64,000 bases of DNA from Gnetum montanum (taxonomy: Eukaryota; Plantae; Gnetophyta). Made by a program: the position numbers and the translations under genes. The stretch is taken from positions 2,346-66,345 of the forward strand of contig MNCI01000167.1 in the NCBI GenBank assembly GCA_015680685.1, in the 5' to 3' direction. Positions 33,401 to 60,400 of the stretch are shown in pieces. Below the pieces are notes generated by a model, which ran no database searches, had not been told where the DNA came from, and saw only the letters and a list, made by a program, of their open reading frames with translations. Positions within the stretch are counted from its first letter, which is position 1, and every line of letters starts with the position of its first letter.

Positions 33401-36400
33401 AATGCATAAATTTCTTTTAAAATCTTATGTTTGTCTACCAAGGTCCTTTTTTCTCAAGAGTGCCTACCTGAAAGAATTTCTAAAGATACTGAACTGAGTG
33501 TAAAATACAAGAACACGGTCAGCATGATAAGCTCTAAATAATGCTTACAGTTAGTATATCATACATTTGGGCTCGAACGCTTAGCCAAAATTATGGTTAA
33601 GTCATCAACATCTAGCAGTGGTTATTGCAAAGAATTTTCTCANATCTTGTGCAGCACCTTCAGTCAATTGATATTCTTGGCAGTCACAGGGTTTACTTGG
33701 TTTTGCATCGAATACTGAAGGAACTGTCAACCAAAAGGCTTGCTGCAGATCAACGTAATTTTGCAGAGGTTTTATTTCACATATTCCTACTTTATTATTG
33801 TCTCTTCTCTTTCAGTGGATTTAAAAAAGTATTGTAGTTAACTTAAAGTTTTAGTTGTATGTTTTCTGGTGAAGTCTCAAGACATACATTTATGTTCATA
33901 TATTTTAAATAATTTTTTTTAAATTGTTAAAATGATCATAATGCCCTGGGTCCTTTTCCAAGGGCTTGTAACTTCTTTCCCCATTATTTTTATGTAAAAA
34001 TTTGAAAGTAGATATCTATGACATAACAAAAACAATGTAATAATACAATGTTATATAAAGGCTTGATGTACAAACTTATATTGTTACATCTGATATGTTG
34101 GGTTGGTAACCCTTTTTTCAGTGCCTAACCTTAACATATCACATGTTATACTGATTATAGTATATTTGGTGTGTGTTATGACTTAAATCGTATTTAGTGT
34201 GATGAAATTTGGGGCTTGATGAGCTAAGCAAGGTTCCAAGAATTCTGTTGGTTGTGTTTCAGTTTTTATGAAGAGATAATTATATTGAGGTGTTCGGAGC
34301 TCCAAGGTAACAAATTTCAGAAAGAAGAAGCTTGTGAGTTCGTGCAATAAGCTATATGAGCCAAAAGCACCAGTAAATTTAAATGCTTATACATGATAAA
34401 TCAATTGAAACATGGGGCCTTTGCAATGCATTGTTTTGATTGAATCAGGTTAAGAAACAACATAGGAATATGAAATGTGCTACTTCTTACAGTATGAAAA
34501 CAATACCAGTTTTGAATTTAATCTAATTCAATGTTATTCCTTAGTCTTCTAAGTAGAGCACCTCTGTATCTCACACCACCAATAATGAATCTAGATAGCT
34601 GGATCATATGAGATTATGCTTTCTTTTAACGTGTTAATTTCTCACGATATGCTTTTTGGCAATGCTACCTCTCACTAAATCCTATTTATTTTGAATAAAC
34701 TTAGAAAGTCCTGTAGGAAACATGAAGTTTTCTGCAATATAACCATGGAAAAATAAGGTTCGTCTTTAGACGTTTCAACCAATGCAGTGGAATTAAGTGA
34801 TTTAATCTTTTGAACATTATTCAAATATATCAAACTTAGAATATTCAAACATTATTTAAATATTATTTTTATTAATAGGTTTAATATAAAGTAAAATGGA
34901 TTATTTATTTATTTGGTCTAATGATAATACTTTATTTATTTTAACTCATCGTGTTTCTAATGAGATATTTCAAAGGCCTTATGCCAGTTAATTTTAGAAA
35001 TCTGAAAATTATAGTATAGAAAATTTAATATTGAAACTTTGAATTATCTATGGAAATAATTTTTTTTCTAAAACTTTGTTGGGTTAACTTCCTAACTGGC
35101 TTTATTCGAATTACCAGGTAACATCCCTGCTTTATAATTATGCATGGGTTCAGTGGACAGCTGATACAAAGTCTATCATTGATGGATTTTCTATTGCTCT
35201 TCAATCTTCTTCAAGAACCTTGCCTCCATTGGGGCACCAACAAGCACTCCATCTAACTAGTGAGAGATGGCTGCTGTGTCTAAAGATACTGAAGTTAATG
35301 CTTCTTTCTGGTTTTCAAAGTGATGCAAAATGTATTCAAGTGAGAAATTTTCTTATCTTTTGAACATGGTAATTTTACGTATTGATTTTAATAGCTATGT
35401 ACTAGCTTATGTGGTGTGCTACTCACACAGGAGGTTCCTATTGTTAAGGATGTTTGTCCTGCTGTCCTGCAAGCAGTTCAATCCATATTACAGTATCGTA
35501 AGTGTTTTCTTCTCTTTTGATCTGTGTACAATAAATAGTCTCTTCTACCTTTATATGTTTCCTTCGACGAAAAATAAGTATATGCTCTGAAGTTAGTTCT
35601 GTTCATTTTTCTTTTGCATGTTGAATATTGTTTTTTTGGAAGGAAGGTCAGGTAAATCGTATCAACAAAATAAACTTCAGGTACATAATGCATATTTACA
35701 ACAGAAAACCCATCCAAAAACGGGGCAGGCTCCCCCTACAACAGGCCCCTTCTAGGCCTATATACACACTGTAAACACAGCAGCCATCAATCTGAAGCAA
35801 TCAAGACCAAAACCGGGCAGAGAACAAAGCCCAACCAAACCCAGACCCAATTCCCTCACCCAAACACGACACACCCCCAAACACAAACAAGGAACAGAGA
35901 AGCCCCTTAAAGATGGTGGGGAAGAGAAAAACAGGTGCACCGGTGGGCCACCTTGAAGTGGACTTGATCTAAAATAGCCCTAAGCTGCGTAGAGGCAACA
36001 AAATTCGTTGCCTGTTGGAACTCTAGGAAGTCCTGTTCCACCTGCAAGTGCTCATTATCCGGAAGTCCTGTTCCACCTGCAAGCGTTCATTATCAGGCAT
36101 ATCTTTGGTCTTATCCGGGTGATACTTGGTGGCCACTAACTCGATATGCCTCTACAACTCAGTCCATGATGCTTCATTGTTGATGACCATAAGGATATAC
36201 ACCTCAAGTGGGGTGAGTGTTTGACATACTTATATAGAGTTTTGAATGAATTTTGAAACTTGAATTGCTGATATTATTATTTACAGGGAGACCATTCTCA
36301 TCAATTTGACATACTTCAGTTTTTTTTTAAAGGTTAAAATGATCAATTTATAATTAGTAAATAAAAATATGTAGAAAGCCAGCTGCTGTTGAACCTAACA

Positions 36401-39400
36401 AGCAGTTAATCATGAGTTTTGTAACCAATTATGAGAAGATCATGATTTGTAAGTCATGGAATGTTGGGACTCTTCTGCGAAATTAAATTATAAGGAAGAA
36501 TAGTGTAACTAAGTGAGAAAGAGAAGTGTGTATCATATACAATCATGAGTTTTGTAACCAATTATGATAGAAGATTGTGATTTGTAAGTCGTGGAATGTT
36601 GGGACTCTTCTGCGAAATAAAATTGTATGGAAGAATAGTGTAACTAAGTGAGAAAGAGAAGTGTGTATGAGAGATGTAGACAAGTGAAAAGGAAAGAAAA
36701 AAGAATTTCATAGAACAACAGGACAAAAATAAGAGTAGCAAAAAGTGAAGACATGGACACAAATAGTCCATGGAGCTATGAATTAAGAAGGTTGTAATGT
36801 TTACAAGATCATTGTAGACTTAATAATCAAAGATGACACATGAATATCCTTTGCTAGAGAAGTGAAGCTGCTGAGTAGACTCACGAGTGAGTTAGGATCT
36901 AGTTTTCTCAATAGGAAGAGAAGGTTCACTATTGAGCTAATTGGTAAGCCTAATGGAGGCAACATTGGAGTAAATGGAGTTGTGAATTAAAGTAGCAAAG
37001 TAGTACACAGAGTCAAACAAGTTTAAGTTGGCCAAGGTAAACTAACTTTTCCTTCATAAGACCAATAAGTACAATTTGGTTAACCTGTAACACATACCTT
37101 GTGTGTTATAATTATGAATACATCTGTCCACTTTTAAACCATTTACAAAAAATATTAATCAATTAATCATTCAGTTACATTCCCTCCACAAGATCCTTGG
37201 GTAATTAGAGTTATCTTTATAACATAAACCAAACTCTAAACATGATATTGGAGTAAGGTTATGGTTAGTGGAAATCACTATTTATAAATCAATTGAATGC
37301 AATAAAAGCTTGTTAAAGGAAAATTGTTAATAGGTACAACGGTACCCAACCAACTGTAACCGTTGGGGAAACAGTATTAAATAAGGATCAATTTAGGGGG
37401 AAAAATTAAGGCATGCAACAAGATCATTTTCAAGAGTGATACAAAGTAGGCAAAACAACATCGTAAGATGGAGAAGGTTCATGAGTTATTGATGAGCTCT
37501 AGAACTACAATTGATGAGGCACTCCAATACCTTATGGCATGTCAAAGCCATTCCACACATTTGAAGTAGCTCCCTCTCTCTCATGGAGTATTGTTTCGAA
37601 TACATTATGTCTGTTCTACAAAGGATGGAAGGTAAGTTGGATAATGGTTACAACTTCATATGAGATTAAGGCATAACCAACACGTGCAACAAAATTGTCC
37701 AAATCAATTGAAACAACAACAATGTAGACAGAATGTCGGGCCTTATTAGTAATATTAGAGACCCATGAATAAATCATGGAATTTACCGTGTAAGCCAAAT
37801 GCCAAGTTTCCCAAACCAAAACCTTATGTTCCAAATTTATCATGTCAGAATCCAAAACATTATATTAACCATTGGAGGGAATCAAATTGAGTCAATATCA
37901 CTTTAACTCACTTTTGTAATACTCTTGCATGGCAGTGAAACACAGATAGTATGTTTCGTTAGATGTTCATTGTGTAAGGATTTAAAACTTATATATTATG
38001 TACGCTTACAAAAAGTAACAACACCATACCAAGGGTATTGAGCTCATAATTGGGATATAATTCCTGTTAAAGAATTTGGCGCATATTGAGGGCAAATGAG
38101 AGTGAAATTAGGGTACAATTTGCACTTGCATTTCTTTATCAAAATCTTGTTGTGAATTAACTATTTCTCAAATTCAGTCAGTGCAAGATGAATCCAGAAA
38201 AGAAGTACAATTTCAAAGCAATTCTAGTAAGGCAAGAAGCTTTTGTGCCTCTGTCTTTCCAGGCCAGGAGAGAAACATTTAAGATTGAACACCTGATAAT
38301 TTTCAATACCAATTATGTGTAGTTGATGGTTGATCTTGATATCGAAGAACAACTCAATGAAGTTGGAATGAGCAGATATGCAGTGCAAGACCTTTCTTCA
38401 GCACAGTTGATTTCAGATGTGGGCATGCTGAAGACCCTCAAATCGTATAACAACGGTGTCTTGGAAATTTTCTACAAAGGTATGTTTGTACACGTCCCTG
38501 TCAATGAGGAAATTGTGAGGCATGTGTTGAAACGTGTGGTGTAAGCCATGATTCCTTGGCTTCAGCCTTTTTATCAGAATAGAACTTTGTGAAAAATCGG
38601 ACAGCTATTTGGATTAATGTCAATTTGTTTAGGGAGCCTATTAGTTGAATGGCCAAATTATACAATAATTGGATTGACTGTTGAGACCATCGGATGTCAA
38701 TTTAATGGAGTATATTGAGGAGTCTATTTTATTTTCATATGTGGAAGATAAAATGCTGCTGGGCATGTTTTGTGGTGCATAATTTTTATAGGGCTCTCTC
38801 GAAGATTAAGGAAGGCACATGATCTAGATTTGGGTTTGTAAGTTTGGTCATAATTATTGAAAAGAAGTTTTTGAGCGCAATGATTTCATCTAGCTTTCCC
38901 ACACATATGTTAATCTCAGTCTTGTCATAAAAAAACAGAGGTTGTTAATTTCCAGAGCGACAAAATTGTTATGTTTGGGTCTGCGGCTATTGTTACGTCT
39001 CCTGCCATCGTAATCATGCAGGTTACGCAAACATCCATAGGTAACTTTAGAAGAAATCCAAAAAGAATAGCCACTTAATCCCCAACAACAAGCTCAAGCA
39101 GGAAGAAGGTACAGAAGATTGATGTTGGTCCTAAGTCCACACCATCAAGACAAAACTCTAACTGTCCATTAGCTGAAGTAGCAAAGAAACATGAACGGGA
39201 GAGGATTCTTAAAGATAAGTTTTTTTCATCGTCCCTCTTCCTTATTCTGAAGATACCAATGGAGAAAGTTTGATTGGTTTAGAAATACTTAATGATTATG
39301 CTTTGGAAAGTATTAAGGAAGTCATGGATGCTACCCAATTGACTCATTCTGTTAGAGTGTGTGGATGTAATGGCATTAGATATTTATAACACAATAGGGG

Positions 39401-42400
39401 CTAAAAATTATTTGCTAAGCAGTAGGATCCCCTTTGCCTAAGAATGGAGGATGCATAGAGAATTCTGGGACAACATTCTGAAAATATGGCTTAAAGACCC
39501 TGAGAAGGCTATTTACGAAGTTGAAAAATATTGGCTAGAGTTAAAAAAAGATTGCATTTTGAAGGATCATGATCTCATAAGGATGGGTGCTTACTGGTAT
39601 GTTGAGTCTATGATTCATTATGTTTGCTTTGGATGAGTGCTGAATCAATAAGAAGAAGATGTCGCTGAAGCATTAAAAAGGTTCTCACTGATAGAAAAAG
39701 ATAAGGAAATATGGGACACATTGAAGCAGGTTCAAGTGAACAAACATGAAAATATTAAAGAAGAATTTAAGAAATTTGTTGAGATAGTCAAGGAATATAA
39801 GATGCATATCAAACCAAAATTAATGCTTCTTGAGCTACTGTCAAGCGCAGCACCCAGAGAACTGGAAGGCACTATTTATAGAATTGAAAATTTGTTGAGA
39901 TAGTCAAGGAATATAAGATGCATATCAAACCAAAATTAATGCTTCTTGAGCTACTGTCAAGCGCAGCACCCAGAGAACTGGAAGGCACTATTTATAGAAT
40001 TGAATAGAAATATCAAGACCAAATTTACGAACTGAAGGACAAATCCTTGAAAGATATAAGACCAATGCAATGCCCTTTGTAGTATCAATCAGGCTTGGAA
40101 TTGATAACAATGCCCCAATTGTGAACATCAATGAAGCAAAGGATAGAATGCATATTACCAAAGTTACTTCCACAGAATTCAAACAGAAATACATAGCCAA
40201 GGAAAGTGAATCTATGGGACGGCTATCTGAAATTGAATGACTGGAGAAGGAGAACAAAGCACTAAAGCTTCAAATGAGTTGGCAAAATCTTGTGCTGCAG
40301 TTACTTGGTCCTGTACTCACAACTGACGTTACAAGTGTAGAAATCGTATACGATATTTAGGATAATTTGCCTCCACAGCTAGATTTAGAAATGACATCAC
40401 CAAAACAGTTAGAACTCTATATTGCTACAAAGAAGACATCATCTCTGCCACTGTTGCCTCAGGAACAACAGCTAGCATCATCAACAACTCTACCAAGTGC
40501 CTTAGTGAAGCAATTGGATGAAACTTTAGAAATTCCCTAGGTTGGACCCTATGATCCGTTTCTCTTAAAAACACATTTGTAGATAGACCGTGATTTAGTA
40601 GTTGTTATACTTAATTTCATCTCATTTGTCATTTCTTTGTCTACAAATGCATGAGTGAAGGGGGAGTTTACTTATGTATATATGATACTTCGTGGCTAGC
40701 CACCATGAGGTTAATTATATGCTCATAATTTTATAACACGTCAAATTCATGACTAAATGCCAAATGAAGTTACAAAACTAATGCTTGAGGGAGAGTGTTG
40801 AATCTAAAAATTAATTAATAATATACAATCATTAGTTTCATAACCAGTTGTGATAAAAGATTGTGATTCGTAAGTCATGGAACATTGTGACTCTTCTGTG
40901 AAATAAAATCATAAGAGTAGTGTTATGAAGTGAAAAAGAGAAGTGTGTGTGAGAAATGTAGACAAGTGAACAAGGAAAAAGAATTTCATGGAACAACAAG
41001 ATAGAAATAAGAGTAGTGAAGAGTGAAAACATGGACACGAATAGTCCATGCAATTATGAACTAAGAAGGTTGTAATGTTTACATGATCATCATAGATCCA
41101 ATGGTTGAAGATGTCATACAAGTATCCTCTTCTAGAGAAGTGAAGTTACCAAGCAGACTCAGAAGTGAGTTGGGATCTAGTTTCCTCAATAGGAAGAGAA
41201 AGTCCATTGTTGAGCCAATTGTAAGCCTGATCCAATTTTCTTAATAGGAAGAATAGGAAGAGGAGGTCAACTTGGGGGCTAAGTTGGACTAAAAGGAGCT
41301 ATGAATTAAAGTAGCAAAGTAGTACATAGAGTATAACAAGTTTTAATTGGCCAAGGCAAACTAACGCTTACTTTGTAAGACCAACAAGTCCAATTTGATT
41401 GACTTGTAACACATACCTTGCATGTTGTAATTATGAATACATTTGCCTACTATTAAACCATTTACGAGAATTGTTAAATAATTAATCATTCAGTTACATT
41501 CCTTACTACAATATTCTTGGGTAATTAGAGTTGTCTTAATGATATAAAACCAAACTCTAACAACCTCAATCAGTCCTTTGTAGGGAAAAATGAAGCAGGG
41601 TCGTGAACCATCCATACAGATTTGAACATGCCTCAGCTTGGGGCAGGGAAATGGAGGAACGTTATGGAAGAAAATCTTGCTTGGTTTCAGCCAAACCACA
41701 GATCATGAGCTGAAACCCATAAACCATATCCCAAACAAAAAAGGACTAGTAGCCTATACCATAGACATGAGCCAAACAAAAGGCACAGACCATTACCCAG
41801 ATAAAATGACCCGGTACTAGTGGTAAGCACACCAGCATGGCAAGCACTCCTGCCATTGTTCTTCTTGACTCAAAATTGAGTTCAAGCCATAAAGGTATGC
41901 CACCTACAATAAAACATTTGAATTGCAATTGGCAGTGATGTGTTACCTGTTCATGCATGGTGCTTTGGATGGACAATGTGCAAATTCCTATTGATCAGTT
42001 GTCATAGGAAAATTACTTGGTTGTTGCTGAGGATGCTGTGCAAGCAAGGCCAGTGAGGGGTTTCCACAGTAGAATCATGCAAGGACTATCTGGCAGAATT
42101 TGAGCAGTGGGGTTAGCGATCTGGGAATGGACAATGTGCAAATTCCTATTGATCAGTTGTCATAGGAAAATTACTTGGTTGTTGCTGAGGATGCTGTGCA
42201 AGCAAGGCCAATGAGGGGTTTCCACAGTAGAATCATGCAAGGACTATCTGGCAGAATTTGAGTAGTGGGGTTAGCGATCTGGGAATCATTGTGGGGTAGA
42301 GAGGTTGAGGTACGGAGTGCTGAAATGTGGATGAGGGTGGGGGTGTGGAGGGTCAGGAAGCTTGAGAGAGGATGTGAAACAAGAGGATATGTGGGAATGG

Positions 42401-45400
42401 GCATAGACGTAACCTGCAGAAAGGGGGTTGGCAGGATAGGGATAGAGAGGATTGACATACTTTTGGTTTAGCTATCAATTTTGTGATCGTTCTTTATGTC
42501 TTAGGTGTTAGAATTTCATGATTTTAAGAGTCATAAGGTTCATGGAATTGCAAATCAACATTTTATGTTCAATGTAGAGTCAAATTTTTGAAAGAAGTAA
42601 TAAACAAAGTTTTCTTTACCATCAAGTTGGGTTTGTTCGAAGTTGGTTCCTACAAGATTAGATGATTTTAATGTAGGAGGTTATTCATGCTCTACGGATT
42701 GCCAAATTCCCTAGATTGTGCCTAAAGCTTGACATCATTAAGGCCTACGATATGCTAAGTTGAGAGGCACTTTCTACTATTATGCAAATGAAAGGGTTTG
42801 AGCCTACATTCATTAGCATGTGTATACACATTCAAGATTCAGCAGCTTTCTCATTTGATATTGGCGGGAGATTATGGAGGTTCTCATCCCTTGGATGGGG
42901 GTTGAGGCAGGGAGACCCACTTTTCCCTTTGCTTTTCATTATCATGATGTATCTCCTTAAATACTATTGTAAGGTGGCGAGGGTGCACGGTCTTGAGACA
43001 GTAGGGGTGGAGTGCTTTTTGGAGCACTATGTTGATGATACCATGTTGCTTTCTCGAGATGGGATTTGCTAGGCGCAGAGGATTAATCAAGCCCTTCAGC
43101 ATCTGGCCTTAGAAATTGGATTGGAGATAAATTGGGGGAAATCTTTGGCCCACTACATCAATGTTGATCCTAGGGTTAGTGGTTGCATATCGTAGATTTT
43201 GGGTATATTGCCTGGCTCCCCTCAAGATTCGTATATGGAGATTCCTCTTTTTGAGTGGAGGATGAAGCCAATATGGAATAAACTAATTTAGAAAATTGAA
43301 ACTTGGGTGGGACATTGGGTTAACTGCTTCTTGATGCGGAAGGGGAGAATTCTTTTGGCTTCGGGGGTGCACTTGGCAATCGTGTGTTTTGTCACTTCTG
43401 TTGTTGCCACCTGACAGGCTATTACTTAGAAAATTAATCAGTTAATTTGAAATTTTGTGTGGTTGGGGGGTAGAGGGGATAGCAGAATGCGTTTCATAAG
43501 TTGGGATACTATTGTGCAACCTCATGAGTCGGGGGGATTAGGCATTTTTAAATTGTTATTGGGGTGGCAATGGTTGGTCACATGACTACTATGGTAGGAA
43601 GAGGGTGCTGCCTAGTGGATTTGAATCATGGCACACATATATCGATGTTGGGAGGTGGGATAGAACGACTTGAATTATGGTGGACACTTTGCGCACATGC
43701 ACAGTTAGTGATGGCATGGGGTTTGATGGGGGAGTCTTTGCGGTAGGTTATATAGGCACTTTACCTATTGGTGGAAGGATGGAAATGCATTTGGCGGGGC
43801 TAGCTATTGGAGAAGATTGAGGTCTTTCTTTGGCTTATTGAGCATAATGCACTCCTAGTACATGCATTATTAAAATGACGGGGGTTACACATTAATGATG
43901 ATTGCCCCTTATGCACTGGTAGCCTTGAGATGGTAATCCATTTCGTTTTTGAATGCCCGTACATGCAGGACATGTGGCAAGTTGCAGGTTTGCATGGGTT
44001 GGCGTAGTTGATGGGGGACTCCAAAGTAGTGCTTATTTTATGGGAGGCTTGGAAAATTTGGAATCGCACCATTTTCAGATTGTAGCATATTTTGGCACCT
44101 GAGCAGATTATCGACAATGCTAAGCATGCGTGGCAGGGACTAATCATAGCTATGGGGGTAACGTCGACCTTCGAGGCAGCCTACGTGGCGTATCACGCGA
44201 ATAAGGAACTTTGGAATCTGGTCGTGCGTAGTAGTTGGGCTGAGATTTTATTGTAGTTGGAAGGGGACCTAGTGTTGGCCAATGATGCTTTCTTTTCAAA
44301 CTAGAGTGGGGACACTACTGAGTTCCAGGGAACTAGGATCATGCTCATAGAGGTAGCATTGGCACTTTACCTAGGGACTGCAACCATGGACGAAATAATT
44401 TTACTAATGGCGCGTGGATTGCATGATGTGCATTTGTTCTTCTATGGGGTTGTGCCACGTACCAAGAGCAAGCAGGTGCCAAAATCTGCCTTGTTGTTGA
44501 TGTGGCGACAAGTTGTTGAGTTGGTCGATAGGTTTTTTGTTCATTCTGGAAATACCTCCAAATTGTAGAGTACGTACTTTGCTTTTTTGAAGTGCACGTG
44601 TCTTGAACAAAGGGTTAACCTTCCTAAGTTTTTTCTAGAAGTGCTGCATCAACAGCACAGAGGTCATCACTTTGGGCTAATCTTTGTGATTTGGTGGGTG
44701 GCATCTATAGGGTAGTTGCAGGGACAAGCTTTTGAGGTTCCGCAGTTGGTGCTTATTGCATCGTGTAAGGTAGTGTACTCATGATGGTAGACAACATAGA
44801 GGGGATAGGGTTCTTAGGTGCTTGGCATGGTAGTAAGGTTTTCGTTGATCTTGAGGGTCTAGATTTGTTGGGCGGAGCTGATTTAGGTTGTGGAGGAGGC
44901 GGTGGCCAAAGCTTGGGTAGAGGAGCGGTAGGCTTGGGAAGCTAGATGGGAAGAGGCTCTCCAACATGCATAGGCCTAGATGGAGGCCCAGTTCCAAGAA
45001 AAGGAAAAGGAGTTGCTTAGGCAAAATGCTTTGCATGTGGAGAGCTCATAGGTGGCAATGTTGGATGAGCTCCAGAACCAGATAAGGGCAGAAATGCAAC
45101 ACAAGAAGGAGGAGCATCAGGAGTGAGAGTGGGCTACAAGGAAGCGGTGTAGCTTAGTCAACAGGTGGACAGGGCACATGCCCGAAATGCGTGGACGTGG
45201 TTTAGGGTAGGCTGATGCCCTTATTTGGTGATGGACATCCATTGCGAAACCCCTTGGTCCATGCTCCGTCGACATATTCGCAGAACTTCCTCTTGGCTAC
45301 TTCTGAATGGATGAGGTTTGCTGCTGAGAATATGAGGAAGGAGGCTGCCATTAAGGAGTTTTAGGAGGCTGCAACCTTCGTTGACTCCACCGGGACACGT

Positions 45401-48400
45401 TGAATGCTATTCACGATCAGGAAACTCCTGACTGTATGTGCTAGAATCTTTCTAAACGTTTGTAGTTGTTTTGGCCATCTTGGGACCTCGACGGTCCCTT
45501 GTTGTTTTCTATTTTCTGTTTTGGTCCTTTTCAGGAGGGGGCTTGATAAAGGTGAGGAGGGGTGATTCATAACACCTTGGTTTTGAAGCTTGAGTGGTTT
45601 TGGGGGGAGGGGAATTGTCCATGGATTCCCAGAGGAGGCCAGGGTTCTAGCATGCTTTTGTTTTGTTTTAATGTTGTTTGTGTTGGCTTGGTTGCTTTTG
45701 GTGGGGGGCTGTGGGGGTTGTCCCCTGCCCCTGCTACGCTGAAAATCACCCTTGTACAAATTTACTTTTCCGTAATACATTCCCAAACATTTTCTCAAAA
45801 AAAAAAAAAGAAAAAAAAGTTTGCTTTAAATCATTTTGGGTGATATACACCTTGTAGTTTTCATGATTGTTCATCAACTTATTTTGTATGAGACATCAAA
45901 TTCTATGATAAGCTGGAATTTTTATAGATCATATACAGACAATTTTTTAATTCATCGTGAGTTATAATATACAGTTCTTCACTCTCGTTGAATGTTATTT
46001 GGATATGAATTTTTTGACACTTTATATCATTCATTAAACTATCGCGACTCTTGGTAATCACTTCATAATTAATATAACAACCACTTGTTATATGTATCAC
46101 CTTGGGTATTGATAACACCACCATGGTGACAACACCATACATGGTGATAATGATGATTGTTAGAGCACAACAGTGGAATAAGGTTCCTTTAAGCTTCTGG
46201 CCATTTAAATCTTGACTCCAAATTTGGCCTCTAGAGTTGACCATGAGTCAACATTGAGTAATTGCTGTTGATTGTGGTATTTTTTTTCTTGACTAGGAGT
46301 TGTAATTGGCTCATGGTGAGCCACCACGGGTTATGGTGTGGTCATGGTGAAGCAGATCCTAGGTTGTGGTCTGATCGTGGTCTTGCAAAATATAGAAAAA
46401 ATTATAATTGAGTAAACCATAAGCTGACCATGTGGTACTTTAAACTACTTTTCCACAGGTCCACCACATGTTGTGGTGGCTTTCGATGATTTGACCACAA
46501 GGAGACCACAGGTTGTGGTCTCTGAAATTTTGCAAAAGTGAAGACCATGAGTTGTGGTGAGGTTGTGGTTTGTTAGAAAACAGATAATAGGTGAACTGGT
46601 CACTTACAACTTTGAGTACGCAAATTAGACCAAATCCATGTTGCTTAGCCTCTCAACAAACACATGAGGCACCAAACGTACAAATAACAGTAAATCTTGA
46701 GAGTGATTTCTTAATTGTGCCACAATCACAAAAGCATGAAAAACATGCAAAACCTCTTGAATCTCCTTCAGTTGACACATACACTGTGAAAGGACTGAGA
46801 CACACATGGGAAACCTTCTTCTCAAGCTTCTAAGGCTTGGACAAAGCTCATACAGGACAAAGCTCATACAGCACACCGAATGAAATTAGAACATGCACTT
46901 GAAAGGATGGGTGTTAATCTTTCCTTGAATGATGAACTCAAACATGAAAAGTAGAGAGAATGAACTTGAATTAGATGCTGAGTAGTGATCCTCTTCAAAT
47001 ATGAACATTAATCTACCTTATACTCTTCATTTCTGTCAACATAGACATGAGAAAACATCCAATTAACTTCAGAAATTGTGAGAACTACAAATATGAGAGA
47101 ATTATGCAAGAAACATTTGAGAATGCATGTAAATAAGATAATTCGTGAGAGATGAACGTGAGAGAACTTGAGAGAAGAATTCATGGAAGTGTGAGAACCA
47201 TAATGCAAGAATGCAATAAAAGAAAGAAAAGGGGGATTGAAGCTAGGAAAGCTTCAACTGAAACACACAATGTGCACACATACAAAATGAAGGGAGAGCT
47301 TCTTTTATTCAACTTCAATATGAGCTTGGCAAGTTAAAATGGGATTACACCCCTATTTATACTTTTTTCTTGAGAAACTTGCCCCATTTGGCATGGCCCC
47401 AACATGAAGGCTCTTGGCCCCTTTATGCCATTTTCAAACATTTCTCTCAACCTAACCTTCTTTTCTTGGTCTGCAAACTAAACAACACTATTTATACCTT
47501 CTATGCTTCCAAACAACCTCTTCAAACATAAAGCAAAGACTATCACCTACCACTACATTACTCAACATGAAATGAAATGATCATGGAAGAGTAAAGCAGA
47601 CCACATGTTGAGGACATCACCTAGCCCATGTGTCAGTTCTCATCCATGATGTGTGTTTCATGTTTGTTTGTAGTGTCTCTATGTGTTTTGGCATGATTGG
47701 GGGTGTTTTGAGCCTAATTTGAGGAGTTTAGGGGGTTTTGGGGTCAATGGGGGCTTGTTTGAAGGTGTTCAGGTGTTTTAGACCTCCAAAAAAGCATATT
47801 TATTTTTAAGCTTGGCAGAATAGACGTCTCCTTTGGAGGATGGACGTCTACCCACAAGGCCAGATGTCTCTTGCATTGACCAACAGCTTTGGAAAGACAT
47901 TTATATCATTTGCAAGACATATACTCTTGGTGTAAGACATATTCTTTTGGTGCAAGATGTCTCTTTGTAGGTAGTCTCAATTCAGGAAAGACATCTTCTC
48001 TACCCCCAAGACATCTTCTTTGATGGGAACAATAGTTATAATTTTGCATTTGGGCATCAAACAACTCTAAAAGTTATAAATAGGCATCAAGTGTAACAAT
48101 GTTGCCCCGACGTTGCCGGGCANATACGCCTCCAAGCAAGCAAGCAACTCACGAGTGAGTGCAAATAGAAGCATAGCTTCTTAACATACACGACTACACA
48201 CCTCATGGAGGGAAACCAACTCCAAAACAAGGACCATACAAACAAGCACACACACACAACCTTGTAGACAACACCGGTGAGAGGGGAGACGATGCACCTA
48301 CAAGGGAAGGTGCCTCACCCCCAGATCACTCACGATCTGGTACAAGGTGTGGCCTGGCACCGCACCAAAACTATCCAGTCTTGGCTGCCTACATATCTGC

Positions 48401-51400: not shown

Positions 51401-54400
51401 CGTTACTTTGGAAAGGTGTACATAGATTTTAAATTGAATCATGATTGTGGATTTCTACTTGCTTTTTTAGTTTTTAAAGATTAAACTATGATTCTAGACC
51501 ACTATGAATGCTTACTATAAACTGCCAGACAACTATGACTCCAAGTTATGGTAATATGTGTTCTTAGAAATGTATATAGGTATTTTTTAAGTTATCCTAT
51601 ATGAATGTGTCTTTGTGAGTATTGTTATTGTAATGCAATTTAATTAGTAGCTTTTTATATTTGTTAGCACTTCTGATTTTGTTTATCACATGTCTTGTAA
51701 GGATTATTCGGGTGGTAATGAATATTTACGATTAGTCATCTGTTAATTTAGACTGCGTATTGATTTTTTTTCCTATATATTCAATTGTTACAGGCGCTGC
51801 TTTTTCAGAAAGTGCTGATAGTTACCACTACTTCATAGAAAAAGCATGCTTGAAGTTAATGAAGGTTTTAATATCAGTCCAGAGAATACATCCATATTCC
51901 TTTAGTTACAATGCCATCATTTTTCCAGTTATGGAATTTTGCTTCAAGAAAATCACAAGTCCAGAAGCACATGTTGCTTCTTTTGATATGTTTGTGATTC
52001 AATGCATGATTTTATTTAAGGCAATACTTGATTGTAAAGAGTACAAGTCATGTGCCATTGGTCATGTTGTTGGTGATCGGACCATATCTTTAGAGCAAGC
52101 AAAGGCTGATGTTGGTAGAAGGGCTGAACAAGTTGTAAAGTCATTTATGCTTGAGGACCGGGTCTTACTATTATGTAATGTTCTTATACGCAGGTATGCT
52201 GTAGTAGTTTTAATTTAATCATTACAGTATATATAAATTTCTCTAAATTCCTATTGAAGTAGAATCTTCAATACATACCACAAGTTAGGCACCCTGATTA
52301 GTTTTTTTAGTAGTGTTAACAATGAACAATGCTTTCCTGCAAACTAGGCATGTTCATTTTTTTCTGTTCGACATTGGTATTTGTAAGTAACACTGATTAT
52401 GTATCAGAATTATAAATGAACTTTTTTAGAAGTAACATAAGAGTTGTCGAATCTTTTCCTTATAGTTTTGGCATAATCTGCACCTCTCACATATTTCATT
52501 CAACTCTTAACAAGTTTTTTTTAATGCTAACTGTTTCTTTTTTTTTTTTCTATATTGGAATACATTAAGAGGTGATCTTAAACTATCTTTTTTTTTAAAG
52601 AAAAGATCGGGAAATGTATTATAAAATATCATGTTATATACAATGTAATAGATATGGGGGATAAGAACCCTCTTGTCCCCCATCACCCCACCCCCGCCTT
52701 CCCCTACAAGTGGAGAAAACATCCCTCCTGAAAAATTGATATGACAGAGACATCACATCCACTCATTAGTGAATGTGCCCGAACCTAACTTTCATTCTCA
52801 ACAAAATTCCCCATTTCAATGGGGTAGATCCAACGATGGATTGTAGACAAGAGACAAAGACCAAATCAGTAGACAAAAATAGGAGCCCTCTTCTATCCAA
52901 TACCAGGGTCTAAAGGTTATAGATGTCTAGGGAGCCTAACATAGTGATATGTTGCCTGTTCCTAGGCATGAATGGCTTCGAAGACTGCCCTGTGTCTTAT
53001 AGTATCTACAAATGCATTAGCTTGCTAAAATGCTTTAAAGGCCTCCTCTTTCTGGGCACATTCCTCAGCAGTGCTAGTCCCATTTGGGTGGAGCTTCGTA
53101 GTAGTTCTTTTGATGTGCTTGTGGAGAGCCATCTAGGACATATTGCAATTAATATCTATAACAATGTATGGACATTTCTTGGGCTCAAGCCACCATCGAG
53201 TCTTCTGCTTGTGAGCGCGATCCTATTGTTGTTGTAGCTCTTTAGACTCTTGTTGGTCTTGCTCGAGCTGCTTGTTGTTCCGCATGAATCAACTCCTCAC
53301 GAATTTGCTCACATAGGTCGTCTTCCATCACAACCCTAGTCTTTGATGCCTTAAAATCCCAACGTCTTTTAGCCTCACGCTCTCGCTTGGCATACTGGCT
53401 CTCGGCCATAGCCGTCAAACATTAGAATTCCTCTTCCCTAGCTTGCCACTTTGCCTCCCAAATGAGTTGTTCTTCCCGTCGAGCTTGCTTTGCCACTTCC
53501 TCTGCTACTTTCTCTGTAGTTGTTGCAATTGCCTTTAGCACAGCCTTTGTTGTTGCCTCCGCTGTGGCCTTTTTTGTCACCTTTGCCACAACTTGTCGCA
53601 ACTCCATCTCAAGTGTTGCGAAGTCAGCTTTGCCCTCTCCGGGAAAGGTGGCCGATGAGCCCCTTGGATGTTAGTGGTCTGTGCCCTTGATGTCTGGCTC
53701 TCTTCTAGCATCCACACTTCCTAGGTGTGCCTTCCAAAAAGAGTCCCCCCCACCTCCCCCCCCTTTGGTCGCTAGCCACTGGTTGTAAACAACATGCAGC
53801 TCAGGTCTTGGTTGCCTTGGGCAAACCAGCTGTGCCACCCTTTGGAGGGCCAAGATTAGGTCTGAGTGGTGGCCCTATCTTTGTCGTCGTAGTGCTGCGA
53901 AGAAGAAATGAGGAAGGTTGACACTGTGGCCAAGTCTTAGGCATCTCAAAAACAAAACATGTATGCTCTATAACTTCCAGGCATTACCTGATTGGATGAA
54001 AAATTGGTCCATCAATTTCGTTGCCACTAAAGCATCAAGTTGAAAGCATCCAAGAGATTTTCCCTAGGAGATCAATAAAAGCCCAAAAGAATTCTTCTGG
54101 GCCACTCATCAGGGCCAGGGGCTCTATCTGACTTAATGGAAGCCAATGTCTCATCTAGCTCCATCCAAGTGAAAAGTTCCAAGAGTCTATTGTTCTCCAC
54201 CATGCCTATAACTGACCTCATTGGAACAGTAGGGGCAAGGTCCTTTTCTTGGCCAAGATATTGGCCCAATACTTCTCCATCACTTGTGCAATCTCCTGAG
54301 CCTTGACTAGAGTGGCCCCCCATCCTGTGTCAGCTTAATGTTTTTAGCCTGGCCATTAGACTTTGCAACAGTGAAAAAGAATTTTGTATTTTTGTCTCCT

Positions 54401-57400
54401 TCCTTCAACCATTTAGTTCGTGCACATTGTTTCTAGTACAACTCTTCTTCTTCAGAATGGAATTGTAATGCTTTTGAGCACCGCCTGTTTTGACTCCTTT
54501 ATCGACTCCCTTTGAATTCTTGTTGAGCTTGGAGCTTTGCAAGGCACGTGAGTAGGGCCATTTAATTGGATCTAAAGGAGAACTTCTTTGTAGCTTTTAT
54601 AGAACAAATGACATGCTTAAGGCCTAGTGAGGCCTATTTTAAGAAAATTTTGTGGATCAATTTGCAAAGGATAACCAGCCTAGATCTTCGCCACTAGAGG
54701 TTTGAGCCAAGGCTTTAGTAGCCATGAGCATTCAAAACAAAAGGGAGAAGTTGTGTGTCCTGGCCCCCTCCCCACCTGGCATAGAATAGATTAGTGATCT
54801 GAAGCTTGTCTTTCCCAAACACCTGCACATTAGAGTTCATCAAGATGTTGGTACTCACCCAAACTTGATCACTTTTGGATAGAACTAGGTCCTTCCCTCA
54901 ATGACGATTACTCCAAGTAAACTTGTAGTTTGCAATATCCATGTCCACCAAGTCATGGGCCTGTAAGAAGTCCAAGAATTGCTAACTACTTGGTGGCTTC
55001 GAGAGATCATCACCAAACTTCTCCCAAACATGCAAGTGTTGGTTTAAATCTCCAACCACAATCAAGTGCCTTTGGTCAACCAACTGAGCAATTCTATTCA
55101 GTTCTTCTAGCCCAACCTTCTAGGTCTAGGCTCCATAGAAGTTCATAAGCCAAAAACTATTCTTCATGAGAAAAAATGGTAATATTCCAGGTAGAGGAGT
55201 CTACTAGGGTATAGGGAAATCTTGCCATTATTGCCAAACCGTCAACCCTACCTCTATTGGGAACCAACTGTGTTTGCCACCCAGCCTAGTTGAGACGGTA
55301 ACTTGGTTTCTTGTAAGCAAACTACTTCACATTTCTTCAAGGTTGGTTGTGACCCCATGTTGATCTCCACCTGAGTCTTTTTACTGCAAGCCATCGGCGT
55401 GAGAGGTCTCCTAGCCTTCCCTAGCTTTGGTGAGATTGGAAAGCCCCCTTGCATGCCTTAGCCGCCTCCAGAATCTTCGTCATTTTGGGAACTGACGAAC
55501 TTCTAACTATTGCAACCCACTCTCTCAATGGGGGTAAATCCTCCCCCCCTCCTCCCCCCCAACCTTGTTAGGTTTTGTAGGCGGTTTGGGGGAGGCAAGT
55601 TTTGGTGATTGGGGTTGCATAGGAGTAGATGCATGCACTTAGGTGTAGGTCGCCCATGTTGAGCCACCAACGTCCATCTGTCTCCTTCCTTGCAAGGTGC
55701 TGGGGCCTTGGTGTAGACCCAACAAGCCATAGCCTGGTGGTTGGCCTTTCCACAAATCGTGCAATGAGCACTAATGGCAGTGCCACTTGCTGAAGACTTG
55801 TTATTGGGGAGATTCCCATACTCAACATGGAGTTTGTCTTCCCTAGCTAGGAGATCCAAGACCACTTCTTGCACTATGTGACATCTTGTTCTCGGATGTC
55901 ATGGCAAACGTTAAATATGTGTTATATTAGACATTATGTAGAAGAAGACAATATACCAAACGTCAAATATATGTCACATTCGACATTATTTGTAAAGGAA
56001 ATAATAGGGAAAATGCATAAGGAGAAAGAAAAAGAATGCTTTATTGATATGGAATAGTGTATCCAGATCATGCTATGAAAGTGTTCCTTAGGGTTTTCTT
56101 CTTTCAGCATGTATCCTTTAGAGGCAATCCAACACTACCACCACGGTTAGGCCTATCATTGACTAGAAGGGATGGCCATTCTTCTAGTTGTCCCACTTCA
56201 CTTGGCTTCCATGACTTGCTTGTACCGGCTCCGCCACTCCATGCCTAGCATGACCTTTAAGCTCGGGTATAAACACCGTAGGTCAAACCCCGAAAGGTTG
56301 CCTCAATAGACATGTCCGTTATTACAATGCACCCTTTCGGGTCTCAATTACAACTACCCTTTTGGGTCTTCTTACGATAATGATAACATTTGTTATGAAG
56401 AGGCACCATCTTCATTATGCAACAGCATCATTTAGGAATGCGGACATTACAATCTACCCTCGTTAGGTTTTGTTTGTCTTTGAACAAGTCCACGTTCATT
56501 GTCTTTTTCCAGCTCTAGTACTTTTGTTATGATCATGTGCTCCAATAATTTGATTTCTCCTTTGAACTTGAAGTTGTTTCTTGCTTATTTTGTAAACAAG
56601 ACACATGTAAGAAAAATATATGGAAAATTAAATATTACTTTTTTAATACTTCATTTTCTAAGATAATGAAAATAGGTGAATTAAAGATCTACCAACCACC
56701 AATCACCAATCCTAACTAGGGTCACACAAATTGCAACTCGTATTTGGTTACCCAAGTGAAGGTAGGGCAAATCCTTTATTCCCGACTTCCATTACCTTAG
56801 ATATTTCACTCATCTAATGAAAATATAAATTAAATAATGAAGAAAATAATAAGATTATAAATAAAAGTAAGAGTGAGATACTTTTTGATCTTAATCAATC
56901 TTATGAATTGATCGGAGTAATTGTAATTCTATCATAAGTGGTATATGATTGGATGATCTTGTTCGAGATGGCAAGGCTTGATCTTGATTCTCAACTTCTT
57001 CTTTAGAAATTAACTCTAGTAATTTGGTAACTTGGAAGAATCGAACATTGTATCAAATATAATCTAGGGTCTTAATGAAGAATGCTATTGACCCACCCTC
57101 ATTAGTCATAGTAGAGTAATTGGTAAACTGTGGTTCTTGATGAGTACTATCCATCAGCATCATATGTTCCTGAATTTTGGAATCTGATTTATCTATTGGA
57201 GATTTGAAGTAAGCAGAATATGCACTGGCTCATGGGATTGCATGTTGAATTGAGTGAAACATCTTCTTCAAATTAGGTTCATCTTTGAAGGATTCTTTTA
57301 CACATCTATATTTTAAGAATTGATGAGCATCACTTCCAACTTTTACATTGAAGTCTCCACAAAGAACAAATGGCACTGGATCGGTATAACTTAGGAATAA

Positions 57401-60400
57401 CTTATTCTTCAAGCTTTCTTTTATTTGCTTAATCAAGTATGCTCCTTGACACAGTCTAACGTCTGAACATGTTGGTTTGGCAATTAAATGTGTTGATTAT
57501 ACATACACATCTTCCTGATAACTAGATTTTTAAAATCACTGCCAAGGCTATGTGATTTTTCCGAAATGTTGATTGTTCTTTCTTTGTCATCACTTGTAGT
57601 TCTGAAATTTCAAAAATCATATTTTCTAAACTCCATTCAAATCTTTGTACTATTCAAACTTGGCTTCTTTATAAAAGATTGTGCAACCATCCATGTTGTG
57701 ATTTCTAGGCATAAAACATCAGCATCCAAATTTTGTAACTTTGTTAAGATGCGTGGGTATTGATATTTGTGCCAATCCAAGGCCCATGGTGGACATAGCA
57801 AATGTTGTTTCTCACTTGTTAAGGATCTTACAAGCATGTTGTATGTTGCAACTTTCATTCTCATTTTTGTATTTTCTTCTGGATCATTTCTCTTCATGGG
57901 TTTCATACACTTTGTCGAAACAATATTTTGAGTCTCCGTGTTGTTCTATCATATGATTTGATTGCAAGATGAATTGATATACATCTTCTTGACTGTTGAA
58001 GACCATTCTATTTCATTAATTGATTCTACAACTAATTTTGGTAATATTTAGCTACATTATCTAATTTCAATAATATTTAACAACATTATCTAATTCTTAA
58101 CAATGTTTCTACGCCACTTAAGACACTGACTCTGGCAGTGTAACTAATGACATGCCTTAGTGATCTTAATACCACAAGCAAAGATTAAGCACTTGATCTC
58201 AAGGCCCACAAGGTTAAATTTGTTAGTCCCAACAAGGCATGATTAGTTCTCGTTTTGTTGTCAACTTTTAAGGCACAATTTCATGATATCATTGAATTAT
58301 TGAGTACCTAGATGATAAATCTGACATCACCATTGAGTTCAAAAGGGTGAAAAATGTTGGAAATGACTATTCATATGTTAAAAATGGACATCGTATACTT
58401 AAGTTACTCTAAAATTAAACTTTTGAGGGTCTTAAGGCACTATATCGGGCAAGGGGTGAAAACTAATTTTTGAGGTTCAATGAGGTAGATGTGACTTCAC
58501 GATTGTGTCTAGAAGGTTGAAATCTGTAAGAAACGACTCTTCGTTTGTTGAAAAAAGCTTCCAAAATCAAAAGTTATGGCTTCTAGAGTCTAGAACCTTT
58601 GGCGCAAAGAAGAAGACTTCTCGAAAGGTCACCCATCCCAAACTACTCCAAAATGAGCATGCTTAATTACAGAATTTTATTCTCGTTGCTACCAAGGTGC
58701 CTAATCTCTCTTTTTTTTTTGAAAATTTTATTTTTTCTCATTCTTAATTTAAACTAATGGTTCAAAGATGGAAATTTGAATTTTTTGTCAGTTGATGGGA
58801 ATTTTGAATTTTTTGTTAGTTGATGGAGAATTTTTCCTGTTGTGCAGCAGGGTGGGATGTCAGCAGCAATGGCCGCGGTGGCATGCTAGCAATGGCTTCG
58901 GGAGCAGATTAGCGGCATTGGGTACAGATTGTTGTTGGTCAATATAGATTGGTGTTTGAGCGGCAGCTTGGAACGGAGCAGATCAATGTCGTTTTTCATT
59001 CTCTTTACTGCATGGCCCAGGTGAGGGCCAACACGGTTTGTGTGTGGCTTGCACAGCATGCAAAGGGGCTCGTGCAGCCCATGTAGGGCCAACGTGGCCT
59101 TTGTAAGGGCTTGCGCAGCCCCAAGTAGGGACTATGTGCCCCATGTAGGGGTCTCTGTGGCCTGTGCTAGGGCCTGCACGACCCCCACAAAGGGTTGGTG
59201 CAGCTCAAGTAGGAACTATGTGGCCTATGGCCTTGGCAGAAACAACGTGCATCAGTGGCAAGGGTTTTCGTTGTTGGAGGGTGCCAGAGGTGGCCTTTAT
59301 GGGTGGTGTTGTCAGTGTCTACGGAGCATTGGAGGTGGCCTTTATGGGCAGTGCCGTCGGTGTCCATGGAGCACTAGAGGTGGCCTTTATGGGCAGTGTT
59401 GTCAATGCCTACGGTGTGCCAGAGGTGGTAGTGATCTACGGTGCTGTTGGTGCTCGTAGAGTGTCGGAGGTGGCAATGATCTAAGGTGCTGTTGGTGCCG
59501 GTGGATTGCCAAAGGTGGTAGTGATCTTTGATGCCATCGGTGCCTGTGGGTGTTAGAGGTGGCATTGATCTACGGTGCCTGTTAGTGCCTATGGAGTGTC
59601 GGAGGTGGTAGTCATTTGTGGTGCCATCAGTGCCCATGGAGCATCGTCAGTGGCTAAAATTGTGATGGATTTTTTGGCAATGGTGGAGGTGACAGTAGCA
59701 GCAATGATGACAATGGTAGTGGAGGCGGTGGCAAAAATGACAGTGCGGTAGGCAGCGAGGGTTTCAGTAGACTACAGGTAAGGGAGTGGCGGTGGTGGCA
59801 AGTGTTGCAAGGCACAGAGGAGTAGGATTTTAGTAGCAACTGAGTGGTATTGCGGGAGCTTGGGGTGCAGCAGCCATGCGTGGCAAGTGTTGGTGTCGCA
59901 GCAGTGCACGGTAGGCATCAATGTTGCTTTGGCCAAGTGGCTAGGATGGCGAGTGGCAGTAGGGAAATGACACAGGTGGTAGGGTGTTTGCAGGAGCATT
60001 GGCCTTAGAAGGGTTCGTGGCTTTTCTAGGGCTTGCATGATCCTTGCAATATTTTNCGCAGCAGCACCATTTGGAAATGGGGATGTTATTTAGGGTTTCT
60101 TAGGAAGAGTTTCTTTATTAATATGGAACTGAAATTGTTTTGTTATTGCGATGTCCCTGAAATTGTGACTTTGTAAGATTTACATGATATACTTTAACTG
60201 AAGTAATATGCAAACTAGAATTGAAAACATAAAAAATTAAACTAACAAATATGAAAGAATAAAAATATGTAAATCAAATGAGCAAACAATCTTATAGCTA
60301 GAGTTGTTTAAAGTTATTGCTTCCAACAGCGTAAGTCACATTTTATTCACCAGTATTAGGTGTTGCACATTTTTGATTTGCTATGTTTGTGGATGGATGC

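Follow-up and report, generated by a model that had tools for sequence, protein, structure and literature searches.

A decayed L1-type LINE of Gnetum montanum and the probable extension of its family's ORF2 into a C-terminal J-domain

LINE copies in the window

The window, the whole 64-kb stretch of Gnetum montanum DNA analysed here, carries the related LINE copies A, B and C. Copy B (about 42540-45818, plus strand) belongs to an abundant family of plant L1-type LINEs and is an old, heavily decayed, 5'-truncated insertion. Copy A is also 5'-truncated, and the 3'UTRs of the three copies can be aligned with one another. The features are as follows.

35910-36229, minus strand: copy A, heavily 5'-truncated, J-domain kept with HPD, one stop and a tandem duplication
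42540-43800, plus strand: copy B, decayed RT part of ORF2, truncated at its 5' end inside RT
43879-44082, plus strand: copy B, zf-RVT and WEAWKIWNRTIF tail motif, in the frame of position 43801
44086-44712, plus strand: copy B, extension block 1, about 210 codons in the zf-RVT frame, family unrecognised
44713-44880, plus strand: copy B, variable linker
44881-45123, plus strand: copy B, charged, helical, coiled-coil-like stretch in the 43801 frame
45124-45162, plus strand: copy B, first frameshift zone, a Q/E/K-rich low-complexity stretch
45163-45444, plus strand: copy B, decayed J-domain, aligned to copy C by tblastx, ORF stop at 45442-45444
45445-45818, plus strand: copy B, 3'UTR and poly(A), the latter at 45797-45818
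52965-54063, minus strand: copy C, tail with second half of block 1, linker, coiled coil and J-domain (HPN)
54064-55898, minus strand: copy C, upstream part with ORF1 end and CCHC knuckle, endonuclease and RT N-terminus

The module order in this LINE family is zf-RVT, globular block, helical/coiled-coil stretch, J-domain, stop, 3'UTR and poly(A). The RT motifs KLDIIKAYD and YVDD are readable in the translation of copy B, and the piece 42764-43069 matches RVT_1 (Pfam, E 2.8e-4), with a score under the Pfam gathering score because the piece is decayed. The zf-RVT of copy B is CPLC...HFVFEC (Pfam, 42-aa piece at 43879-44004, E 1.2e-5, 26.3 bits vs a cutoff of 27.5), and WEAWKIWNRTIF lies in the same 43801 frame. 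The endonuclease is missing from copy B because of the 5' truncation. It is seen in copy C only (Exo_endo_phos_2, Pfam, E 7.5e-4 for a 45-aa piece at 54985-55119), where the CCHC motif and the RT motif APGPD are also readable, and where RT is joined to the extension by an internal deletion near 54025. The poly(T) of copy C on the plus strand is at 52588-52596. Target-site duplications were looked for around copy B and none were found, and an Rfam search of the whole window gave no match.

The tail downstream of zf-RVT

The first-pass annotation, made from the letters and translations, had described in copy B a ~450-codon extension after zf-RVT, in one frame from 43801 to ~45160 with mostly TAG stops, followed by two frameshifts. 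The quoted peptides, frames and both frameshifts, together with LLN at the HPD position, are all present in the translations of copy B (43801-45444), and the extension, counted from 44086 through the stop at 45442-45444, spans about 452 codons. The 43801 frame has 20 stops over 43801-45160 (17 TAG, 3 TGA and 0 TAA); the other two frames have 29 and 30 over the same interval, of mixed types. Over 44086-44565 (160 codons) there are 2 in-frame stops, compared with 10 and 12 in the other frames (binomial P 0.004). The variable linker has many stops, is poorly alignable with copy C and is covered by few aligning paralogs (the summed contig depth drops to 16-37 in the two better-covered public DNA runs, X1 and X5). 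The frame inside 44782-44860 is uncertain, as there are six stops within 27 codons. The conserved blocks that flank the linker (44518-44709 and 44887-44952) share the 43801 frame, and thus the net shift across the linker is zero; the claim of a single, mostly TAG-interrupted frame is upheld to this extent, with 44782-44860 set apart.

Extension block 1 is probably all-helical. Its three stop-free pieces from 44086-44712 have no Pfam match at E up to 1 (pieces only), and the same pieces gave no match to RNase H/RVT_3, which was sought after zf-RVT at the same threshold. With the 87-aa piece (44305-44565), phmmer against 1.84 billion representative proteins found only a spurious tandem-repeat protein, DUF6297, and a word-based homologue search found no candidate with enough common words. 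An Atlas search with the globular block gave no usable match, and a metagenome scan with the B/C alignment of the VNLPxFF block gave 322 pattern matches, of which 0 were confirmed. The absence of block 1 relatives may simply reflect decay and fragmentation of the query pieces. An AF2 model of the 87-aa piece has three helices with a pLDDT of 59, too weak for use. The coiled-coil-like stretch of copy B contains VVEEAVAKAWVEER and, past a stop, AWEARWEEAL. For the stop-free homologous piece of copy C (53425-53670), AF2 gives a 45-residue helix (pLDDT 84-90), and this long charged helix is a putative coiled coil.

By tblastx, the proteins of copies B and C are 47% identical over 64 aa, 45% over 22 aa and 41% over 58 aa (summed E 6e-27). 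The 47% identity is at 44518-44709 (phmmer 40-43 bits), and the coiled-coil stretch at 44887-45114 is matched with 15.3 bits (phmmer, E 8e-6). In copy C, a single frame from 54063 to 53245 (273 codons) has 4 stops vs 13 and 13 off frame. In three ungapped B/C blocks, identity is 53-72% at codon positions 1+2 and 28-36% at position 3, with pN/pS of 0.30-0.41 in frame vs 0.8-1.4 off frame. A frame-blind nucleotide alignment of B and C has 63/67/48% identity by codon position (chi-square P 3e-6). With third positions saturated and a pN/pS of 0.3-0.4 in frame vs about 1 off frame, the tail is concluded to have evolved as protein. The annotation had held that a lack of purifying selection on the extension would speak against its proposal. 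Judging from these sequence comparisons, the C-terminal ~300 codons of the tail are under purifying selection in the frame given here; for the first ~145 codons, to which the window holds no comparator copy, the evidence consists of the low stop density and indel-free paralogs.

Public DNA runs contain many paralogous contigs, covering zf-RVT, the whole tail and the 3'UTR alike; paralog contigs are collinear and gap-free over 43811-44378 and 44044-44443. The TAG stops of copy B at 44566 and 45049 are CAG in the paralog majority, its stop at 44302 is TGG in paralogs, and its stops at 44254 and 44083 are CGA and GAG in individual paralogs. Several stops and both frameshifts are private to copy B. 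Poly(A)+ RNA reads match short patches only (44263-44302, 44668-44703 and 45191-45241), with flanks diverging on both sides, suggesting low-level poly(A)+ transcripts of relatives, so that some members of the family may still be expressed.

It is very unlikely that the tail is a passenger, that is, a host-gene fragment acquired a single time, through template switching or 3' transduction, that is of no use to the element. LINEs do make chimeric copies, the tail block matches nothing LINE-like in databases, and RNA reads that match in short patches and diverge beyond them could stem from a host gene with such domains. However, A, B and C are mutually saturated at synonymous sites and yet have the same module order immediately before homologous 3'UTRs and poly(A), and the in-frame pN/pS points to long-term purifying selection while the module was copied within the LINE. 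The breadth of the paralog contigs also counts against a passenger.

Less improbable, though still unlikely, is that the tail was a separate third ORF (or two) downstream of a normal-sized ORF2, reached by reinitiation, an internal start or frameshifting. No intact copy is seen, and the ancestor may have had a stop separating the tail from zf-RVT. Copy B has a TAG at 44083, three codons past the WEAWKIWNRTIF motif, and paralog depth falls at 44072-44207, right at the zf-RVT/extension junction. The one paralog with GAG in place of this TAG argues against such a stop (at a loose alignment end, at 44077), as do the single frame shared by zf-RVT and block 1 and the three paralog contigs that span the junction without indels. 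Additionally, no conserved ATG is found past the 44083 stop in copy B.

A separate ORF might also be read from the frame change right before the J-domain in both B and C. In copy B, RAHARNAWTWF..CPYLVMDIHCETPWSMLRRHIRRTSSWLLLNG is in the third frame beyond the shift near 45124-45160, and beyond the second shift AENMRKEAAIKEF, a stop and EAATFVDST are in the second frame. However, the shift between coiled coil and J-domain, at about the same place in each copy, is +2 in copy B and +1 in copy C. One paralog contig has 126 nt vs 101 nt in copy B at 45049-45149 (+25 nt), which brings the coiled-coil and J sides into one frame. The differing shifts of B (+2) and C (+1), and the lack of one in this paralog, speak against a conserved programmed frameshift before the J-domain, and this idea is rejected.

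The terminal J-domain

The J-domain (DnaJ/Hsp40, PF00226) has roughly 70 residues in four helices, with HPD between helices II and III. A local J-domain profile built on 118 bacterial DnaJ genes has only two matches in the six-frame translation of the whole window, one in the tail of copy A and the other in that of copy C, each on the correct strand. Read-throughs for frame-tracked scoring were taken from window coordinates, with X marking every stop and shift and no actual residue inserted; in copy A, which has a 35-nt tandem duplication at 36025-36094, one of the two repeats was skipped, with X at the joint. With frame tracking, the profile matches copy A with 24.0 bits (E 1.7e-9) across its positions 6-68, and copy C with 13.9 bits (E 2.4e-6); 0/2000 shuffles attain either score. 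The sole Pfam family matched by the 42-aa HPD piece of copy A is DnaJ (E 0.036), and 11/11 PDB matches of this piece at E up to 10 are J-domains; a word-based search for homologous proteins found no candidate with enough common words. PDB searches with the helix III-IV piece of copy A, and with the HPN piece of copy C alone, gave no J-domain match. The terminal domain of the sister copies A and C is, as judged by sequence, a true J-domain. In all three copies a stop is found 5-21 codons past it.

The first-pass annotation had aligned the terminal segments of copy B to J-like segments of the other two copies, and this alignment is reproduced with copy C by tblastx (the 41% over 58 aa) and with copy A at the DNA level. 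HPD is present in the family (copy A, KYHPDK), is HPN in copy C and is lost in copy B, where the position reads LLN (45300-45308). Copy B scores 0.6 bits on the J-domain profile, which 45/2000 shuffles reach and which is not significant; its terminal segment is identifiable as a J-domain only through homology to C and A. This low score and LLN are what a chance likeness, with no J-domain remnant in copy B, would also give. Such a coincidence seems very improbable: B aligns to C through the J region and the part just before it, the J-domain matches of C and A are significant, and the paralog majority has the residues kept in A and C at two positions where B deviates, namely T instead of P at 45252, as also in RNA reads, and F instead of I at 45350. 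The J segment of copy B has further breaks at 45312 and about 45387, and the gap of roughly 7 nt at 45387 is filled in paralogs. The module of copy B is dead: 20 stops precede the first shift and more follow in the J-like tail, the frame is shifted twice, and HPD has turned into LLN.

Ancestral ORF2 and possible meaning of the J-domain

The best explanation is that ORF2 of the ancestor probably ran ~450 codons past zf-RVT into a C-terminal J-domain, and that copy B is a dead copy of it. In an active ancestor, zf-RVT would have been followed by a helical block of unrecognised family, the variable linker, a long charged helix and the J-domain, and then by a stop, a 3'UTR of roughly 350 nt and poly(A). 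As to the EN-RT-zf-accessory-coiled coil-J architecture proposed in the annotation, the module order and the membership in a LINE hold, with copy B lacking EN. Because no intact copy is seen, we infer the uninterrupted EN-RT-zf-tail-J ORF2, and consider it likely.

In the literature searched, no published description of a LINE with a J-domain was found, in agreement with the annotation, which did not recognise the architecture as described. Its phrase that the extension stands where RNase H would usually be applies solely to the RNase H-bearing plant L1 lineage. In these plant L1s, ORF2 carries an additional RNase H domain at its C-terminus (Smyshlyaev et al. 2013, cited in PMC5203782 and PMC4686597). 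They resemble the present family in EN, RT, zf-RVT and an added ORF2 C-terminal domain upstream of 3'UTR/poly(A), and differ in having RNase H instead of helical block, coiled coil and J-domain. Insect R1 LINEs carry a tobamovirus-like SF1 helicase domain at the C-terminus of ORF2, a region that tolerates insertions (PMC4686597). There too, a foreign protein domain is joined to the C-terminus of a LINE ORF2, but the LINE clade, host kingdom and domain are different, with a nucleic-acid enzyme there and a co-chaperone module here.

Among viruses, polyomavirus T antigens carry an N-terminal J-domain. Copy A shares the HPD fold features with J-domain co-chaperones, and the LINE family would, like the T antigens, be a mobile or viral element encoding its own Hsp70 recruiter; here, however, the domain is C-terminal on the RT polyprotein of a non-LTR retrotransposon. 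Compared with bacterial DnaJ, the loop that links HPD to helix III has a few extra residues, and unlike in class I/II Hsp40s there is no Gly/Phe region and no zinc-finger domain.

LINE ORF2 proteins are large, fold with difficulty and work in cis, on the RNA that encodes them. By analogy with known J-domain action, the HPD loop would dock on a host cytosolic or nuclear Hsp70 and trigger its ATPase; both Hsp70 binding and ATPase stimulation by the tail J-domain are predictions of this analogy. In this way the element would load Hsp70 in cis onto its large ORF2 protein or its RNP, where the chaperone might aid folding, RNP assembly/remodelling, or nuclear steps of target-primed reverse transcription. 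One role of the coiled coil may be to multimerise the J-domain or to space it. The Hsp70s HSPA8 and HSPA1A are co-purification partners of human L1 ORF2p (PMC5821459), an example of a LINE ORF2 protein associated with Hsp70; a comparable association is predicted here from the J-domain. Human L1, however, is without a J-domain of its own and would depend on host J-proteins, whereas the plant family would hard-wire recruitment.

On balance, it seems somewhat favoured that a whole long-lived, abundant plant L1 lineage has an Hsp70 co-chaperone of its own, encoded at the C-terminal end of its RT polyprotein after a previously unseen helical domain. This helical block may represent a new protein family linked to mobile elements. 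If true, the J-domain would be a third kind of C-terminal acquisition, beside RNase H and SF1 helicase, and the lineage would be the first known case of a retrotransposon with built-in recruitment of host chaperones. Chaperone recruitment would then limit retrotransposition enough to merit encoding.

Reading frames of copy B and its sister copies

Three copies of the LINE family were compared in the window:

43800-45450, plus strand: zf-RVT region and extension of copy B, a decayed, 5'-truncated L1-type LINE
35910-36229, minus strand: copy A, short and 5'-truncated, with its terminal domain kept (KYHPDK)
About 52590-55900, minus strand: copy C, with an ORF1 end carrying a CCHC knuckle, an endonuclease, the RT N-terminus and a partial extension

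All peptides quoted for copy B in the first-pass annotation were found in the three forward translations of 43800-45450. The zf-RVT motif CPLC...HFVFEC (Pfam zf-RVT, E 1.2e-5, 43879-44004) and the WEAWKIWNRTIF motif share the frame starting at 43801, which extends as far as ~45123. Between 43801 and 45160 this frame contains 20 stops (17 TAG, 3 TGA, no TAA), compared with 29 and 30 stops of mixed types in the other two. The stops are thus mostly TAG, as first described, and the bias is consistent with the proposed decay through C>T and G>A transitions in CAG and TGG codons. Over 44086-44565, within the first part of the extension (block 1, 44086-44712), only 2 of the 160 codons are stops, where the off-frame readings have 10 and 12 (P 0.004). 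Within the linker the frame is uncertain at 44782-44860, due to the presence of 6 stops in 27 codons; the conserved blocks on either side of it are in one common frame. Near 45124-45160 the reading shifts to the third frame (...DRAHARNAWTWF..CPYLVMDIHCETPWSMLRRHIRRTSSWLLLNG), then shifts again to the second frame (AENMRKEAAIKEF*EAATFVDST) and, past a small deletion, continues in the first frame (...RDTLNAIHDQETPDCMC) up to a stop at 45442-45444. The 3'UTR follows, ending in poly(A) at 45797-45818. RT remnants are found upstream (RVT_1, E 2.8e-4; YVDD), and as the copy is truncated within the RT, near 42500-42600, it has no endonuclease.

Just upstream of this truncated end, a 158-nt unit is present twice in tandem (41969-42284, 99% identical). 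A different repeat, ~750 nt long and with no relation to the LINE tail, occurs twice in the same orientation (78-79% identical), once upstream of copy B (40818-41560) and once flanking copy A on its upstream side (36408-37239). Plus-strand GC skew is strongly positive across 42000-46000 (0.25-0.34), marking copy B; 58001-60000, similar in skew and GC content, has G-rich, repeat-like ORFs.

One stop and a tandem duplication of 35 nt interrupt copy A. The duplication occupies 36025-36094 (minus strand, units from 36094 and 36059), and the frame shifts just past HPDKTKDMPDNE. Copy C carries a recognisable endonuclease (Pfam Exo_endo_phos_2, E 7.5e-4) and an internal deletion of ~2.4 kb near 54025 (54020-54075, minus strand), which joins the RT N-terminus, in the region of the APGPD motif, to the middle of block 1. 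A single frame runs from 54063 to 53245 (273 codons, 4 stops versus 13 and 13 off frame); the J-like part, reading HPN, lies past it after a 1-nt shift. A conserved programmed frameshift before the J-domain was considered, and is argued against by the different shifts of B (+2) and C (+1). Beyond the upstream end of copy C, an 89-aa ORF (57637-57906, minus strand; VATYNML...DADVLCLE) resembles the N-terminus of CCR4/nocturnin-type EEP nucleases.

No nucleotide-level similarity was found among A, B and C with blastn. The B and C proteins align in three blocks of 64, 22 and 58 aa, which are 47%, 45% and 41% identical, respectively; phmmer scores block 1 at 40-43 bits and the coiled coil at 15 bits. 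The 3'UTRs and tails of all three copies are alignable, and in each the frame ends 5-21 codons past the terminal domain.

Identity of the terminal domain and the rest of the extension

Taken singly, the stop-free pieces of the terminal domain are too short for strong scores. A 42-aa piece of copy A matches Pfam DnaJ with E 0.036, and all 11 of its matches in the PDB (E up to 10) are J-domain chains. A J-domain profile of 78 positions was made from 118 distinct J-domains of 120 bacterial dnaJ loci (degenerate DNA pattern) and scanned against the window translated in all six frames, with stops as X. Only two matches appear on both strands of the 64 kb, 36086-36199 and 52977-53177 (both minus), and these coincide exactly with the tails of copies A and C. 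In frame-tracked read-throughs with X at every break, the profile gives 24.0 bits for copy A (E 1.7e-9, profile positions 6-68) and 13.9 bits for copy C (E 2.4e-6), neither score being reached by any of 2000 shuffles. On these scores, the terminal domain of this LINE family is a J-domain. Copy B itself (0.6 bits, reached by 45 of 2000 shuffles) retains no more than a decayed remnant of it, which can be recognised because it is homologous to C and A.

For block 1 the searches found no known family: its stop-free pieces gave nothing useful against Pfam, a word-indexed protein search gave no match, HMMER against 1.84 billion representatives gave a spurious repeat protein as its sole match, and an Atlas search and metagenome scan found no relative. 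AF2 models an 87-aa piece as all-helical with low confidence (pLDDT 59), and the copy C piece homologous to the coiled coil as a 45-residue helix (pLDDT 84-90).

Selection, paralogs and transcripts

Codon positions 1 and 2 of the three ungapped B/C blocks are 53-72% identical and position 3 is 28-36% identical, the latter indicating saturation. The proposed frame has a pN/pS of 0.30-0.41, compared with 0.8-1.4 when the frame is shifted either way. As these blocks were picked by protein similarity, a frame-blind nucleotide alignment of 44500-45460 with copy C was added; identity by codon position is 63/67/48% (chi-square P 3e-6). The codon-position bias and pN/pS together indicate that purifying selection acted on the second half of block 1, on the coiled coil and on the J-domain during the divergence of the B and C lineages. 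The first-pass annotation had made its proposal depend on such selection, which is thus seen for these three parts; the first ~145 codons of the extension are without a comparator in the window, and are supported by low stop density and indel-free paralogs. Purifying selection over a long time, and a module conserved across copies with saturated synonymous sites, make it unlikely that the tail is a passenger without function.

DNA runs labelled as three organisms contain the copy B locus itself at about 99% identity, which points either to an old insertion or to closely related taxa. At likeness of at least 80%, 225, 251 and 97 contigs from three DNA runs were aligned to 43800-45830, covering zf-RVT, extension, J region and 3'UTR; most are <90% alike and are thus paralogs. 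Base calls at single positions rest on the 40 variant rows listed of 732. Among these, the TAGs of B at 44566 and 45049 are CAG in most paralogs, CGA stands in loose ends opposite the TAG at 44254, and loose ends past 44302 begin with GG, so that B's TAG there would be TGG in paralogs; at 45387, paralogs carry ~7 nt missing from B relative to A and C. At least one paralog has GAG in place of the TAG at 44083. The 101 nt of B at 45049-45149 correspond to 126 nt in one paralog, detected in two runs, and this length puts the coiled-coil and J frames in register. Paralog contigs span 43811-44378 and 44044-44443 gap-free, and the phase relation of zf-RVT and block 1 is therefore common to them.

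In one poly(A)+ RNA run (X18), 49 reads match B in short patches only (44263-44302, 44668-44703 and 45191-45241). Their flanks are diverged on both sides but remain open in the same frame; near the J-domain start, for example, they read DKAHAQNAR and HQFTTWSAL. Low-level transcription of more distant relatives is thus seen. The reads may come from a LINE subfamily that is still active or from a host gene sharing these domains.

Architecture and possible function

The best reading is of a plant L1 lineage with the ORF2 order EN, RT, zf-RVT, helical block, linker, coiled coil and J-domain. Fusion into one ancestral ORF2, as first proposed, is likely and is supported by the shared frames, the stops and shifts private to B and the indel-free paralogs, although no intact copy is among those seen. 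A tail encoded as a separate downstream ORF is less probable.

The first-pass annotation did not recognise the architecture as one already described, and in a full-text literature search for J-domains or DnaJ in LINEs or retrotransposons no LINE encoding a J-domain was likewise found. At its C-terminus, LINE ORF2 is known to have gained RNase H in plant L1 (PMC5203782, PMC4686597) and an SF1 helicase in insect R1 (PMC4686597), whereas the family here would carry a J-domain in this place. Going by what J-domains are established to do, the HPD loop would bring in host Hsp70 and stimulate its ATPase, and the recruited Hsp70 may act in cis on ORF2p or the RNP. Such a mechanism is plausible, as human L1 ORF2p co-purifies with HSPA8 and HSPA1A (PMC5821459).
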